The notes beneath the pieces were generated by a model. The model saw only the letters and a program-made list of their open reading frames with translations. It was not told where the DNA came from and searched no databases. Positions 9,321 through 24,307 of a DNA stretch of 64,000 bases are shown piece by piece. The stretch lies in the sequence record MZ443780.1, one strand, 5' to 3'. A program made the position numbers and the translations under genes. Numbering within the stretch: position 1 is the stretch's first letter; every line of letters begins with the position of its first letter.

Positions 9321-10997
9321 TTACTGACTCAGCGTTGTGGAGGTGCTGCCTGTCGGGTTGATGTTGAAGCGATAGATCAGACGCTTGGTTGTACGCGTCG
9401 GGTCCAGCACGATATCCAGAATCAGATCGCCGTTAGCGATAGTCTGGTTCGTGTTGTTTGTATCGTCACACACTACGACATAGCCCTGAGAGCCAGAGCT
9501 ACCACTGCGCAGACCGCGAGCCAGTTTGATTTCTTCGAGGAACTTCTCAACGATTCCTTTGAGGAAACCGCGAAGAATATCATCGTTCGGATCAAACAGG
9601 CCGACTTTGCACGTTCTCTGGCAGACTTCGAGGACGTAGCCTACCATACGCTGGATCTGAATCTGCTGGAATGCAGAGTTCATATTGTACTGAGTGCTCG
9701 CTTCCCACACAGCGTAACCGCCACCCATGATAGCAGGCAGTTTACGAATGTAGTTCACTTGCTCACGCGTCATCGCATCACGGTCATCCTGATCGTACTT
9801 CTGAGCGATCTCTAAGATGTTCAGTGGGCTTGACGCAGTAATACCAGCAGGTGCAAACCAGCTACCACGGTTGTTGTCCGTGTACGCAAACACAGCACAG
9901 ATCTGACCTACACACGCAGTCCACAGGTAGCGACCGGTATCTTCATCGAAGATTTTGATATCAGGCGTATACAGTGCCATGTTGCTATCGTTGACGTTCA
10001 GAGTCTGACGACGGTAGCGAATCGCTTTCGACACAGACTGCTCGGCAGATGGAACGCCGCAGATAACGAAGCAGTTGATGTGCGGTGCAGCAGCAGCTTT
10101 CATACCACGATGCACGATGTAATCCTGAGTAGGACTAATCAGCAACGTTACACGCACTTCTTCAGGGTCACCGAAGTATTCCTGATACGCAGCAGCGATC
10201 TGGTCGGAACCAACAACGTCACCATCAGAGCCACCTTTGAAGAAGATGAAGTCAGAGGTGAAGAAGTCAATGTCCGTAGTGAAGTACGGGTTGCGAATGA
10301 AACGGAAGTTGGAGCTTTCGTTTTCCATCGCGTGATCGATACGATACTGACGCTCGAACTCATCGGCGTAATCGAACAGGCTGCACTGGTAAGAGTTTAC
10401 CGGGTTGCTGCCAGCTTGATAGTTCTCGTATTCGTCGATATAGAACAGTTTCGTGTTATATGACTTACGGTCATCGAATGGGTCAAGGCCGCGTGGCGTA
10501 GCAGGACGAATCTGCAATGCCATTTGGTTGTTCCAGTCGCCTGGGTTTTCCAGAATAACGTAACCGAGGATGTTGTCGTTCAACGGGTCAGTAGGCAGGA
10601 AGCCCAGCTGATCAGGAGAATCAACACCAACAACGTCGCCGTTATCATCGGTGTAAGGGGTAATGCGCACTACTGGTTGTACAGCAGACGCGTCATCGAC
10701 AGTAACCACACCGACCGCGTATTTTGCGTTCTTAGTGATACGGACGTATTTGAGCTGATTGGTCTGTTCTGACACAGGCAGCGCAAGGTACAAGCCGAGG
10801 CCATACTTGGGATCTTTTGCTCCGAAGATGTTTTTCAAATCATCTTTATTACGCACATCAACACGCTGGTTAACAGGACCGCGACGCGCCTGACCAACAA
10901 TGCCTACTACTGCCGTAGATAAAGACGTTGCACCAACGGAGAGATCCCGTTTGCCAGTATAAACACCAGCAGAGGAATGCGTTGAGTTAACGGGCAT
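9321..10997 (-). CDS. Contractile tail sheath protein
   Basis: Start at ATG 10997 (MPVNSTHSSAGVY, AAGGAG RBS). Typical sheath motifs VGIVGQARRGPVNQ, WFAPAG, IQIQR, FDPNDD and LILDIVLDPTR. Confidence 0.9.
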   Translation of the reverse strand: MPVNSTHSSAGVYTGKRDLSVGATSLSTAVVGIVGQARRGPVNQRVDVRNKDDLKNIFGAKDPKYGLGLYLALPVSEQTNQLKYVRITKNAKYAVGVVTVDDASAVQPVVRITPYTDDNGDVVGVDSPDQLGFLPTDPLNDNILGYVILENPGDWNNQMALQIRPATPRGLDPFDDRKSYNTKLFYIDEYENYQAGSNPVNSYQCSLFDYADEFERQYRIDHAMENESSNFRFIRNPYFTTDIDFFTSDFIFFKGGSDGDVVGSDQIAAAYQEYFGDPEEVRVTLLISPTQDYIVHRGMKAAAAPHINCFVICGVPSAEQSVSKAIRYRRQTLNVNDSNMALYTPDIKIFDEDTGRYLWTACVGQICAVFAYTDNNRGSWFAPAGITASSPLNILEIAQKYDQDDRDAMTREQVNYIRKLPAIMGGGYAVWEASTQYNMNSAFQQIQIQRMVGYVLEVCQRTCKVGLFDPNDDILRGFLKGIVEKFLEEIKLARGLRSGSSGSQGYVVVCDDTNNTNQTIANGDLILDIVLDPTRTTKRLIYRFNINPTGSTSTTLSQ

Positions 10998-19658: not shown

Positions 19659-19917
19659 CTCTATCCTCTAAAACAAATTGTAGTGTGCCCTGTATATTTA
19701 CAGCATTCAGGCGCTTACCTGTCTGTGCAATCAGGCCATTCAACACGCCGATAAGATCAGCGCTGTAGCAGTTCTCAGCAATCTTGTGGACGTACATATC
19801 GTCAGGCACATCGCCTGGGTTAAGCTGCCAAGCAGTACGCAAGGCAGCTCCCATGAAGGCCGGACGCTCCACCAGATGCTTGTTCAAAAACGAACATACA
19901 TCTTCGGCAGTTATCAT
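19624..19917 (-). CDS. Hypothetical protein
   Basis: 97 aa, ATGA overlap with the polymerase stop. Confidence 0.5.
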   Translation of the reverse strand: MITAEDVCSFLNKHLVERPAFMGAALRTAWQLNPGDVPDDMYVHKIAENCYSADLIGVLNGLIAQTGKRLNAVNIQGTLQFVLEDRDEDLSITEEPR

Positions 19918-21215
19918 TTCTTCGTAATCCCCTTGAGCGCCAGTTTGAGCATCGACTTGCTGATTTTGATTTTCTTCTGAGGCGCAGCGCCACCAGCAGC
20001 GGCAGCCGCTTTCTTCGCTTTCTCCTCAGCTTCATACTTCTCGAACGTTTTAGTGTTCTCAGGAAGTTCAGCAAGCCACTCTTTGATGTTCTTCTTGTCT
20101 TTGTTGGTGAGAGGATTGACTTTGTCCATAGAACGAATTTTGATATCGTTCGCCCAAAGCTGTTTCTTCATCCACTCAGACATAAGATGGTACTGGTCTT
20201 CCATGATAGAGTCCAGCGTCTTATCGACGTCGAGGTCTGTCTCACCGAGTTCATCACGTTTAATCTCAAGGCCATCTTTGATGATCTTCTTGAGCTGCAC
20301 GTAAGAGAAGTTCCAGCTCTGCACATCTTTCTCGGACGCACCGATTTCAAAGTCGATTTCAGGCACGGACGTGAACTCAAACCCTGCATGACGTTTCTGT
20401 ACGACTTCGACCACTGCGCTGGTCATCGCACGTTCGATCATATCGAGCGCAAGGAAGATCCATTTGTAATCGCAGTCAACGGTCAAGGAGTCGTGTACCG
20501 ATACGTTCATGTCGAAGTCTGGGTACTCGCCATTTGCTTTGAAGTATTCGTACTTCATGCGGTCAAGAATACGAATCGCACTCATCATCAGGTCAGAACC
20601 AAAACCCTGAACTGGACTGTTTACCGCGCGACGATCACACGCAGCATGAACCATGTTGGCTTCTTTGTGTGACTCAGGCAGCATCAAGCCCCAGAGATGA
20701 CGACGACGACCAACAGGCGATTCAACAAAGAAGTTCTCATGTGCAAACTTCTTAATCTTGTCGAACCACTTCAAGCCAACAGGGAATCGCGTAAGGAACT
20801 TGCCTTTGATTTCTGCAATCTCAGACACTTCACGACCTGTAGACTTCGCAAGACCTTTATCACCCTGCTGATAAATCAAGCCGAAGATAACTGTCTTAAC
20901 CGCGTTACGTACGGACTTGGTTACGTCCATTACGTTTGGAATGCCGAAGAAGTATGCGGCGTTGATTTTGTGAACGTCACCCTCTGCTTCGACGCGGTGT
21001 TCGATCCACGGGTCAGGCACTGTACGATAGCGATGACGCAACGCACGACCCTGTTCGAATACGTCTGCAACACCCTGGTCACCAGAGATGATTGACCAAC
21101 CACGAACTTCGTGCGCTGAGTAGTCGACCTTGATAAGCAGGCGATTCTTACGCGCAATCAGAATACGTTTGATCAGTTTACCCATCTCACTACGCGACGG
21201 TACCTGCTGGAGATT
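19914..21215 (-). CDS. Family A DNA polymerase, exon 2 (polymerase domain)
   Basis: Frame extends upstream of the listed ATG to NLQQVPSRSE; motif A DYSAHEVR, motif B RNAVKTVIFGLIYQ, RRAVNSPVQG, motif C SVHDS. Confidence 0.92.
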   Translation of the reverse strand, partial: NLQQVPSRSEMGKLIKRILIARKNRLLIKVDYSAHEVRGWSIISGDQGVADVFEQGRALRHRYRTVPDPWIEHRVEAEGDVHKINAAYFFGIPNVMDVTKSVRNAVKTVIFGLIYQQGDKGLAKSTGREVSEIAEIKGKFLTRFPVGLKWFDKIKKFAHENFFVESPVGRRRHLWGLMLPESHKEANMVHAACDRRAVNSPVQGFGSDLMMSAIRILDRMKYEYFKANGEYPDFDMNVSVHDSLTVDCDYKWIFLALDMIERAMTSAVVEVVQKRHAGFEFTSVPEIDFEIGASEKDVQSWNFSYVQLKKIIKDGLEIKRDELGETDLDVDKTLDSIMEDQYHLMSEWMKKQLWANDIKIRSMDKVNPLTNKDKKNIKEWLAELPENTKTFEKYEAEEKAKKAAAAAGGAAPQKKIKISKSMLKLALKGITKK

Positions 21216-22435
21216 TTTGTGGTCTTAAAACGTGTTCGCAACACACGCCCTGATGATGCGAGTACCAACATTCCTCGTCTTACACACCACCACACCGTTT
21301 ACCGATGTGGAAGAGACTATATCAAGTCCGCTATTCAGTAATAGAAAACAAATGCTCACCTGAACCAATCATGCGTATTGTAGTTTTACCTTTCTTGATT
21401 TTCTTAATCTTCTGTTTCGGAAAATCATTTCTCGGTTTATCATCAATACCCAGCAGGTCACACACGTTGTTGTAATGAATCGCTGCGGCTTCTTCTGTAT
21501 CAAAGCGTCTACGACCATAAACAATTTTGTTGTGTCGCACTAAGCCTACCCACTTCTGACGACCTTTCTCAAAGAGAACACCAAAGTATTTCGATGCACC
21601 TTTTCGTTGTCCGCCAATCTTCTTGCCTGATGTAGGTTTATTATATACGTTCAAACCCATCTCTCTGGCGTGGAGAATATTACGTGAGTTACTGCACCAC
21701 TCTAGGTTATCAACACAGTTGTTTGTTTTGATACCATCAAGATGGTTTACCATCGGCTTTGTTTCAGGATGTTTGTTTTTCTTCCAAACAGTAGCAACTA
21801 CGCGATGCGCAAGAGGTCCGCGAATCCATAAAGATAAATAACCTTTTGGATGTTTACGTCCGATCGTCAGGCGCACTTCACCTTCGTCACTAACAATCAA
21901 GAACACACCTGTCTTATGGACAAAGATGTTCTCTCTATAGGACTTCCAACATTTAAAGTTGGTTAGTGAATACGCAGTGCTTACGTTTGGATGATCGTGA
22001 AGGAATTTAGGCGCCCATGCTTCGATATAGTGTTTCAGATATTTCGGCAAAGGATGCTGCTCTGCAACGAGCGCAATAGCACGGCCTTTCTTCACGGTCG
22101 TTTTTACTTTTTTCATATTTGCCTCATGGAACCTTTTGTCGATGATACATTTTAATTATCGTCAACAAGTCCCAAATGAGGTATTTCTGAAAATATTCTG
22201 AATAGACTTATTCTCTCGTCTGACGCGCTTGCATATCAGACTCAAACGAGAACTTAGGACGCTACCATTTCGCGTGACCATTTGCTTGTCACTCTACTCC
22301 CTCGCGGGATAGTCGTTAGGCTTTTAGTCGTTTCCGACATTTAGCACGGTAGGTTCTCCTTACACATTCGCTGCGTAAGGCTCTTCCCCGTTTAGGTAGC
22401 TTTCGACATGCAGTTTCCTACATGAAGCCCAATCT
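21216..22435 (-). mobile_element. Group I intron (td/SPO1-like IA2 type), 1220 nt, homing endonuclease ORF in the P8 loop
   Basis: P CTAAACGGGGAA (22384-95), Q CCGTGCTAAAT (22339-49), R CCTAACGACTAT (22309-20), S TTGATATAGTCT (about 21313-24); P3 GCTACC/GGTAGC; IGS AGATTGGG pairs with the ligated exons CCT|AATCT; splicing restores GRTSASDP|NLQQVP. Confidence 0.92.
21331..22116 (-). CDS. Intron-encoded HNH homing endonuclease with a C-terminal AP2-like domain
   Basis: [24 protein letters not shown] (HNH) and [26 protein letters not shown] (AP2-like). Confidence 0.85.
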
Positions 22436-24307
22436 AGGATCACTAGCGCTTGTACGACCCGTTACAACGCCGAGATAACCGTACGTTGGTCGAATAGATC
22501 TGTCGTGTTTGAAGTCTTCTGACTCGCCCCAGAGTTTAAGCAGACTGTTAACGTAGGCGTTCTTGAGCTTGTACGCTTTTCCGAGCTTCGAGTAGAGAGC
22601 AACAAGCGGTATATCTGCATACGCCGCTTGGAAGTCTTTGTCGAGCTTGCCCGTCTTCTTACCGTTCTCACGTAACTGCTCCCCTTCTTTCAGAGGCTTG
22701 AGTTTCATTACATCGAAGAACAGGATTTGTTTATGCTCCGACTTCGACATATCGAACTTGGTGACCTCGACTTTGCCCATAAGACCCATCTTAGGAACAT
22801 TGTCGTCTTTGCAGATCATCTTGTTCGCAGCCTTAACTTCAGGGCTGTTCATGAACTCACGCTCTACGTTTCGAATCTCCTCGTTGATTGGGGAGTTCGG
22901 AAGGTTGAGCTTAAACAGGTAGTCGATATCAGCGCCAGCACCTGTTGTCTCAAGTATCGAGAACGCATGAATCTGGTCTGAGATTTGTTCACTGACCATA
23001 GACTCATACTTACCGTACTTGATATCGTTCGCTCGAAGCATCTGCTTCTCTGCAATGCGGAACGGCACAATAACGTCGAGTCCAGCATACTCTTGCACGT
23101 TTTCATCAAGGTCAACGTCTGCAATCGTCGCTCGCATCTCTTTACCGAACGATACTTCGTGATACACGGTACAACCGAACTGCATCGTCAGGTTCGCCAA
23201 GTTGTAGTAACCGTTACCGGTGACGTTCAACAACGACTTGGCGTTTTCATCAAAGGCAAACTCACCCGCCTGAATATCCCAAACGTTTGCTGCGTAACTA
23301 CGAATGCCGAAGTTAGAGCGCATTACGTTCAGGTCGAACTTCGCGTTGGTATAGATTTGATACTTGTTCGTGTTCTCCTCAAAGAAGTCACGGAACAGTT
23401 CTTTCACCTTACGCAGTTCTTTCGGACTGAATGGGCTGTCTCTGTGATAGACAGGTATGACATACGCTTTCTTACCGTTGTCCGATAACTGCACCGTCAG
23501 AATCTTGTTCTTGATACGGTTCAGGTTCTCGGTTTCGGTATCGACTGCAACCTTCTTGGAACGCTTCATACGCTTCAAGATTTTCTCAAGCTGCTTGACC
23601 TTCGTTACATACACGAGGTCCCAGTTACGCTTCTTACCGCACGTAACTTCGTCGATCTTATAGCGCATTCCCTTGTTCAGCCACGGCAACATCCAACGTG
23701 CCATGTAACCCAGAGTGTACGATGAACCTGCAATGTGCATCGGGTTCAACACTGTGTGGTAGCTGACGTTCGGTAGATGAATGAAGCTGTGCTTCTTCCC
23801 ATCGAACTTTAACTTCGTTGGGATTTCAACACCGTACCAGTGCTCGTAGTGCTCTTTCGAGAACTGGATCTTCTCGTTGTTCAACGCTTTGAACGGCGCT
23901 TTACCAAACGTCAGGACGTAATCAGGTTTATAGTCTACGATGATTTCTCGCAGACGATTGGCGAACGCGGCATCAGCATCTTCCTTGAACTGCTCACCCT
24001 TGTCATACGTCTTGAACATGTTATACGAGATAACAAGGAAGCTCCAGTCATCGAGAGTAGTCTTTGTCGGGAAGACGTCCTCAAGATACTGCATCTGGTT
24101 CAAGAACAACTCACCTTCTGTCGAGGTAAAGATTCTACCACTACGCAGGTCTTCTGTCGGCATATGATCAAGGACGAGTAGCGCTTTACCGCCTTTAGCG
24201 CTTTTGCTTACGCTTTTTAATAATCGAACACCGTCATAGGTCTGCATGTCTGCAAACTGCTCTGGCGGGTCGAAGTCGAGTGAAATAAACTTGGGTTTGT
24301 TCACCAT
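22436..24307 (-). CDS. Family A DNA polymerase, exon 1 (UDG-like domain, 3'-5' exonuclease, start of the polymerase domain)
   Basis: VAVDTET (ExoI), NAKFDL (ExoII), YAGLD (ExoIII); ends at VVTGRTSASDP. Predicted spliced product is 624+433 = 1057 aa. Confidence 0.9.

Follow-up and report, generated by a model that had tools for sequence, protein, structure and literature searches.

A group IA2 intron with a terminal adenosine in an Erwinia jumbo phage's gene for DNA polymerase

The family-A DNA polymerase genes of phages SPO1, SP82, Bastille and Pf-WMP3 are interrupted by group I introns at the position of residue 674 of Escherichia coli Pol I, and each of these site-674 introns is associated with an HNH nicking endonuclease (I-HmuI, I-HmuII, I-BasI and I-PfoP3I, respectively) (PMC3428280, PMC11878797). 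Their subgroup, IA2, is defined by two extra helices, P7.1 and P7.2, located between P7 and the 3' strand of P3 and joined by G-U-A (PMC3428280). The Pf-WMP3 intron ends in a 3'-terminal guanosine, which has been called typical of most group I introns (PMC3428280), and for group I introns this terminal base, omega-G, has been described as conserved universally and as important for catalysis (PMC8146996). Both the prediction of splice sites and the annotation of introns rely on it. The locus examined here is a 1220-nt insertion in the polymerase gene of the Erwinia jumbo phage pEa_SNUABM_40 (MZ443780.1, genus Alexandravirus, 267 kb), of which a stretch of 64,000 nt, the window, was analysed; the last base of this insertion, at position 21216 and read on the minus strand, is A.

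The insertion resembles the site-674 introns in the family-A polymerase gene that it occupies, its insertion site and its IA2 subgroup with the GUA linker. Also shared are an HNH gene in a peripheral loop, a P10 that is 4-5 bp long, and the U.G pair that marks the 5' splice site. It differs from them in its host, a jumbo phage that infects a Gram-negative plant pathogen, and no nucleotide similarity between them and this intron is detectable beyond core motifs. Compared with Pf-WMP3, the only one for which the terminal base was compared, it ends in A, and its open reading frame (ORF) sits in P8, whereas that of Pf-WMP3 starts in P6a. The only natural omega-A precedent found is the ND5-717 intron of hexacoral mitochondria (sea anemone and coral), whose correctly ligated mRNA is present in RNA-seq data (PMC8146996). 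The likeness between the two, taken from the published description, is functional and consists of the natural terminal A and a large insertion in P8. However, ND5-717 is organellar, obligatory and strictly vertical, and carries ordinary mitochondrial genes instead of a homing endonuclease (PMC8146996), whereas the intron of the phage is a mobile, optional element that can be compared directly with its G-ending sisters. In the literature searched, subscription journals being outside it, no phage group I intron ending in A was found, nor any paper linking Alexandravirus to introns. We consider it likely that the insertion is a mobile site-674 IA2 intron that is removed exactly, from between CCU and A... 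at its 5' end to between ...AAA and AAUCU at its 3' end, with A as its omega base, and spliced by the route proposed below. What is observed in this account are the boundaries, an architecture of the group I type, a P7 whose G-C pocket is unaltered, and the A itself, which is carried by a diverse lineage under purifying selection.

Over 20900-22800 the window and MZ443780.1 are 100% identical. The limits of the insertion are given by its flanks, which lie 1901 nt apart here and 681 nt apart in 42 other Alexandravirus/Dickeya phage records (megablast), so that 1220 nt have been inserted (21216..22435, minus strand, as are all features below). The intron is thus carried by one of 43 phage records of the INPHARED collection, the 42 related records being without the insertion. 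Exon 1 (22436..24307, 624 codons) comprises the 3'-5' exonuclease domain (Pfam PF01612, E=9.8e-17) and the N-terminal polymerase part, and ends with TSASDP, its last codons being AGT GAT CCT, up to 22436; exon 2 (19914..21215, 433 codons; polymerase domain, Pfam PF00476, E=1e-40) starts at 21215 with AAT CTC CAG. Joined, they form an open frame of 1057 codons with no stop, whose product is identical to the uninterrupted pEa_SNUABM_3 polymerase at 1054/1054 aligned residues, with 0 gaps. It is this identity with an intronless protein that fixes the splice junction. The boundary can slide by 1 base because intron and exon 2 both begin with A, and the last intron base is A in either register. The preliminary description of this DNA had placed the intron at 21216-22435 and the junction between SASDP and NLQQVP, in agreement with both the flank spacing and the protein identity. 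No 3' site after a G preserves the conserved TSASDPNLQQVP stretch, since the in-frame choices lose or gain residues. The first residue of exon 2 aligns with Taq polymerase residue 580, which places the insertion between Taq 579 and 580; with a Taq-to-E. coli offset that we take to be 95, this position corresponds to the one after E. coli Pol I residue 674, that is, the classic polymerase intron site. GenBank leaves the intron unannotated and lists three separate 'hypothetical protein' CDSs across 19914-24307 (pEaSNUABM40_00176 to 00178), which correspond to exon 1 extended by read-through into intron sequence, to the HNH ORF, and to exon 2 in a form truncated at its 5' end.

The terminal A recurs well beyond this genome. 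Seven distinct sequences with a common 3' domain all end in A before AAUCUC, and therefore lack omega-G: the window, from a phage isolate, two IMG/VR jumbo-phage contigs (3300031370_000001, L012; 3300011226_000001, L008/L015), the Logan assemblies L188/L189, L193 and L190, and an ENA assembly (L194). Their exons, ORFs and tails have diverged from one another. Past the conserved UUAAG, the tails read ACCACAAA, ACCACAAAA, ACCGAAAA or ACCGCCAAA, and then always AAUCUCCA. These four variants differ in length by 1 nt, and a 1-nt length polymorphism indicates that the tail is untranslated. As every base between the variable part of the tail and the AAU codon is A, the terminal base has to be A in all seven. 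The omega-A ending proposed in the preliminary description therefore stands, with the junction set by the intronless protein and A found in seven independent sequences; the comparison with homologous introns that it had suggested yielded, besides these seven, G-ending relatives at the same site. The relatives, more than 20 related introns, were found with a 15-19-nt core pattern and with the endonuclease protein. When the 3' ribozyme piece was compared with phage genomes (BLAST), the source genome was the sole match, and a metagenome scan returned contigs already known from IMG/VR and chance matches, and nothing else. A 15-nt guide pattern, run against viral (42 loci) and genome collections (at least 120), gave after filtering only chance matches beyond five known loci (L007, L008, L012, L013 and L016, the last being on the same contig as L013).

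A more distant relative, L199, lies on a Logan contig (SRR25399828, 950-1100) and has the tail ...GAGCGAGA before AAUCUACAG. Its 5' exon is beyond the contig end, and a search for a full-length copy found none; provided that it is spliced, as usual, after CCU, L199 would end in A as well, possibly through a second and independent loss of the terminal G.

On comparative grounds, the insertion is classified as a group IA2 intron with the HNH ORF in the loop of P8. Three Rfam scans of the window, one at the gathering threshold, a permissive one of the region and a permissive one of the whole window, gave no group I match; the permissive region scan returned spurious miRNA-like matches only, at the hairpin upstream of the HNH ORF. 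The intron is missed because the 786-nt ORF and its leader split P8, and the case shows that such introns go unannotated: GenBank has the split polymerase and the endonuclease as three hypothetical proteins, and RNA-family scans fail owing to the ORF in P8. As Rfam is silent on the window, the class was taken from an ORF-less homologue, L007, and from covariation. L007, on a 214-kb IMG/VR contig, has the same guide and insertion site as the window, and matches model positions 1-253 of Rfam RF00028 with 30.6 bits (E=7.3e-6). Consensus folding of eight relatives with RNAalifold gave P7, P7.1, P7.2, P8, P9 and P9.2, in which 21 of 35 pairs show compensatory change; for P2, P4 and P5, also folded from relatives, the figure is 10 of 20, which brings the total to 31/55. 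The window sequence lines up column for column with the alignment of the relatives.

The structure begins with P1 (22428..22438), in which the exon CCU (22436-22438) pairs with the intron GGG (22428-22430), so that a U.G wobble marks the 5' splice site; neither CCU nor GGG varies in any relative. GGG belongs to the internal guide AGAUUGGG (22428-22435), which is common to all close relatives whose 5' end is on the locus (L198 is omitted, as its 5' end is not). The remainder of the guide, AGAUU (22431-22435), is the P10 partner, read from the sequence, which pairs over 5 bp with AAUCU at the start of exon 2 (21211-21215). P2 is the hairpin CAUGUAG/GAAA/CUGCAUG (22407..22424; RNAalifold, 5 of 7 pairs compensatory), and P4 and P5 occupy 22346-22391 (RNAalifold pairs). 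The two strands of P3, GCUACC (22395-22400) and GGUAGC (22261-22266; alignment and family fold), covary as GCUACC/GGUAGC, AUUACC/GGUAAU and GUUACC/GGUAAC. The P6 hairpin, GUCG GAAA CGAC (22327..22338), has the compensatory variants GAGC/GCUC, GUGA/UCAC and CAAAC/GUUUG in the close family. P7 is formed by GACUAU (22309..22314), which bears the G of the G-C guanosine-binding pair, and by AUAGUC (21315-21320; alignment and family fold); its 5' strand is invariant in every relative and matches the Rfam consensus GACUA/UAGUC. The preliminary description had named the guide, the P1, P10 and P7 pairings just given, and all of them are present in the sequence. P7.1 (CCC GCGA GGG), an A-GUA-G linker and P7.2 (GUGAC...GUCAC) follow at 22274..22308 and are the hallmark of IA2; the assignment to this subgroup rests on their being joined by G-U-A. 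Both helices covary, P7.1 as CCC/GGG versus CGC/GCG, and P7.2 as GUGAC/GUCAC versus GUGAU/AUCAC and GUGGC/GCCAC.

The strands of P8, placed by alignment and family fold, are GUCC (22257-22260) and, on the far side of the ORF, GGAC (21326-21329), the latter followed by J8/7 within 21315..21329. P9 (21290..21310) is the hairpin CCACAUCG/GUAAA/CGGUGUGG, which is found both in the consensus and in the single fold and covaries across the family. Within 21231..21289 lie P9.1 (UGGUG, 21285-21289, with CAUCA, 21251-21255), for which relatives have compensatory variants, P9.1a (CGAG/CUCG) and the P9.2 hairpin (21231-21247, loop GUUGCGA), found in the family fold and also with compensatory variants, such as C-G to U-A in L194. 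The intron closes with the 3' tail UUUUAAGACCACAAA (21216..21230).

At the same insertion site, nine close relatives (L195, L196, L197, L198, L200, L191, L192, L007 and L013/L016) and three distant ones end in G. A homologous HNH ORF is located in P8 in L191, L192, L195-L198 and L200, whereas L007 has no ORF, and the insertion of L013 sits upstream of P7. The tail of L195, UUAAGAACAAAAG, equals that of the window in length and differs at 3 positions, omega among them. As this nearest G-ending tail is so close, the simplest and most likely origin of the terminal A would be a single G-to-A substitution in an L195-like tail. An altered guanosine pocket, considered as an explanation of the A, does not exist: P7 keeps its consensus G-C pair, A-ending and G-ending introns do not differ in J8/7 or in the 3' strand of P7, and the 5' piece, from P1 to the 5' strand of P8, has no column that sets the two apart. 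The pocket has therefore not been re-specified alongside the A, and the differences specific to the A-ending clade are confined to P9, P9.1, P9.2 and the tail. The grouping of the 5' ribozyme halves is a different one: the A-ending L194 falls with the G-ending L192, and the A-ending window with the G-ending L191, with near-identical cores, while the 3' halves group by terminal base; this pattern indicates that the two ribozyme halves, parted by the P8 ORF, have recombined between intron lineages. Despite substantial divergence, the A-ending lineage has retained its terminal A in a gene central to replication; with its unchanged pocket and with G-ending sisters whose core is near-identical, it provides a natural contrast for studying 3' splice-site selection and the contribution of the last base.

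The mobility of the intron is indicated by its HNH ORF, its presence or absence at a fixed site and the traces of co-conversion around it. From -16 to +9 of the junction, a span of 16 nt at the end of exon 1 and 9 nt at the start of exon 2 (outer bounds with the intron, 21207..22451), there are 13 substitutions relative to pEa_SNUABM_3, all of them synonymous, against only 9 in the other 2975 nt compared. This cluster of synonymous changes is the co-conversion footprint left by homing. The intronless allele of pEa_SNUABM_3 has CCG and AACUU where the intron-bearing allele has CCU and AAUCU, so that co-conversion also supplied the bases that pair with the guide. Recent horizontal spread is indicated by the comparison of the window with L012, in which the introns are 98.6% identical and the exons only 88-90%, all 16 ORF differences being synonymous.

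Selection acts on both parts of the element. Between the window and IMG/VR 3300011226, the HNH ORF has a dS of 0.67-1.39 with a dN/dS of 0.03-0.11, and the ribozyme core shows 4 differences in about 320 nt. Compensatory changes are found inside the A-ending clade in P5, P6, P7.2 and P9.2, and the polymerase exons of the A-ending genomes are intact, with a dN/dS of 0.06-0.10. These values indicate purifying selection on the ribozyme and the ORF. As the lineage is old, diverse and under such selection, the terminal A cannot be strongly deleterious.

The proposed route starts in the ordinary way, with a free guanosine attacking at the U.G pair of P1 (CCU/GGG). In the second step, the 3' splice site would be positioned mainly by the perfect 5-bp P10 (AGAUU/AAUCU), whose internal U-A, C-G and U-A pairs fix its register within the A run; as the G-ending sisters also have P10, it predates the A. 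The terminal A would sit poorly in the guanosine pocket or be tolerated there, with a lower affinity than G, and exon ligation would probably be slower than in the G-ending sisters, yet enough for a viable phage. This raises the question of whether an atypical splicing step gates the supply of polymerase.

The second step may also be aided by pairing of the clade-specific tail (ACCR) with UGGU. The preliminary description had proposed a P9.1-like helix of UGGU/ACCA and UAAGAC/GUUUUA, which is indeed in the minimum-free-energy fold of the A-ending clade; its support is thermodynamic only, however, and the P9.1 with which it competes is supported by covariation. Instead of P9.1, a pairing of GUGGU (21286-21290) with the tail segment ACCAC (21219-21223) is possible in the window. 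P9.1 reads UGGUG/CAUCA in the window and CGAUG/CAUCG or CGAUA/UGUCG in relatives, and the replacement of CGAUG/CAUCG by UGGUG/CAUCA is a compensated change that speaks for it. The G-ending sisters have tails without ACC and a P9.1 5' strand that is CGAUG or CGGUG, not UGGUG, and the UGGU/ACCA helix cannot form in the nearest of them. The tail helix is thus a possible clade-specific docking element, suggested by folding, and not an established one.

Taken further, the same pairings would make the second step largely independent of guanosine recognition, P10 and the clade-specific tail helix docking the 3' site and leaving omega free to change, while the canonical pocket would still take a free G for the first step. 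We put this forward tentatively, and on balance with some doubt. If it were true, the intron would be a natural ribozyme with G-ending sisters for comparison, and if in addition L199 represents a second loss, omega-G would be evolvable in phage introns instead of fixed.

Several points weigh against the account as a whole. The 30.6 bits of L007, although far from a chance score, do not reach the gathering threshold of RF00028 (50 bits), and the window has no match. That the phage intron splices is something that we infer from its conservation and from the fact that the isolate is propagated as a phage, and part of that conservation may reflect transfer instead of long vertical persistence, given that the 5' and 3' halves have recombined. 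The pairing between the tail and UGGU lacks true covariation, as the bases that face U are A or G only. Self-splicing of the Tetrahymena intron that depends on adenosine was reportedly obtained by Been and Perrotta in 1991 with mutants of the nucleoside-binding site, not with the wild-type pocket, so that an unaided second step with A would be unexpected. Those engineered variants (Been and Perrotta 1991, cited in PMC2588497) offer an analogy, in that adenine takes over the role of guanine in the nucleoside-binding site. Their use of A is said to have needed a changed G-C pair in P7, whereas the pocket of the phage intron is unchanged.

It is here that the main rival arises, according to which the terminal-A junction is the same, but the 3' splice site is held by a protein, of the phage or of the host, or through coupling to translation; such a factor would be required because the unchanged G-C pocket would bind A too poorly alone. 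P7 and the 5' core are alike in A-ending and G-ending relatives, so that no compensation is visible in the RNA, as this explanation would have it. Protein-assisted splicing is common in organelles. The sole natural precedent found is organellar too (PMC8146996). On the other hand, no candidate factor is linked to the intron, and the A-ending 3' domain is found in polymerase genes that differ by a dS of 0.6-0.8 and with ORFs down to 70% identity, so that any helper would have to be widely available. HNH endonucleases are not known to act as maturases. For these reasons we regard the helper as unlikely, although it ranks next after unaided splicing of the A-ending intron.

Far less probable is a dead intron, in which splicing does not occur and the phage relies on a split polymerase (629 aa, and 423 aa from an ATG at 21185) or on another polymerase. 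The three separate 'hypothetical protein' CDSs in GenBank fit this idea, and so does the in-frame ATG located 10 codons into exon 2, but the fragments would lack NLQQVPSRSE, which is part of the most conserved stretch of the protein. Moreover, the 10 codons from the 3' splice site to that ATG, which would then go untranslated, show synonymous differences only among the A-ending genomes. Conservation is far stronger in the ribozyme than in the ORF, and the ribozyme has compensatory changes, neither of which a dead ribozyme would show; the product of the joined exons also matches the uninterrupted protein at 100% identity.

Even less credible is a canonical G elsewhere, with the frame restored in another way. 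There is a G 8 nt upstream of the inferred 3' site, at the end of UUAAG, and a run of five or six A could allow ribosomal slippage; a 5' site shifted by 1 base, adding 3 residues, was the remaining version. Every option amounts to a frameshift, insertion or deletion in the invariant TSASDPNLQQVP stretch. The stretch from that G to AAU varies in sequence and in length (8 or 9 nt), which is incompatible with its translation, and the shifted 5' site loses the U.G pair kept in all relatives. As alternative 3' sites, those after UUAAG and after CCAG were rejected along with the 1-base-shifted 5' site: each of them would change the conserved peptide or shift the frame, and the length of the tail is variable. 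As for an error of sequencing or assembly in one genome, which the preliminary description had left open and which the single intron-bearing record among the 43 might suggest, it is excluded by six additional, independent sequences (IMG/VR, Logan and ENA assemblies) that end in A, with diverged flanks and four tail variants.

The HNH ORF itself (21331..22116, predicted, 261 aa), in the P8 loop, matches PHROG 59 'HNH endonuclease' with E=1e-24; its match to Pfam HNH_3 (E=0.0015) is below the family cut-off, and that to the I-HmuI structure 1U3E is weak (E=0.27). It has 24 homologues, with a dN/dS of 0-0.11 against relatives. Upstream of it, an extension of P8 is predicted to fold into a hairpin (22122..22181; ViennaRNA) in which CCUCAU (22176-22181) pairs with AUGAGG (22122-22127). 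The AUGAGG strand holds the Shine-Dalgarno sequence of the ORF, which the hairpin would thus sequester, and it is this hairpin that gives rise to the spurious miRNA-family matches in Rfam. The endonucleases of the phage T4 introns are known to be under translational control, which the Shine-Dalgarno hairpin of the window resembles.

Related introns were also seen in other settings. Polymerase introns of Schitoviridae, namely those of Pseudomonas phages CRC2 and CL (L003/L006) and two from IMG/VR (L010 and L014), occupy the same site with a related core and end in G; they carry a related HNH/AP2-like ORF in P6 and not in P8, which indicates that the endonuclease gene has moved between loops independently of the ribozyme. 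L013 (IMG/VR 3300033997_000243, 9790-10360) is a near-identical copy of the L007 ribozyme with an insertion of about 550 nt after P5, which has its own ORF and a second GAUAUAGUC motif, and may be a nested or rearranged element. In N4-like coliphages, IA2 introns lie in another gene: Escherichia phage U1G has one (L004, 3000-3880), and in Gamaleyavirus NAN33P5 (L005, 1100-3180) the P7 strands occur in two sets, some 1.2 kb from each other, which probably means two introns in one gene. In Klebsiella phage Pylas, the gene beside a related intron core is labelled ATPase/NTPase.

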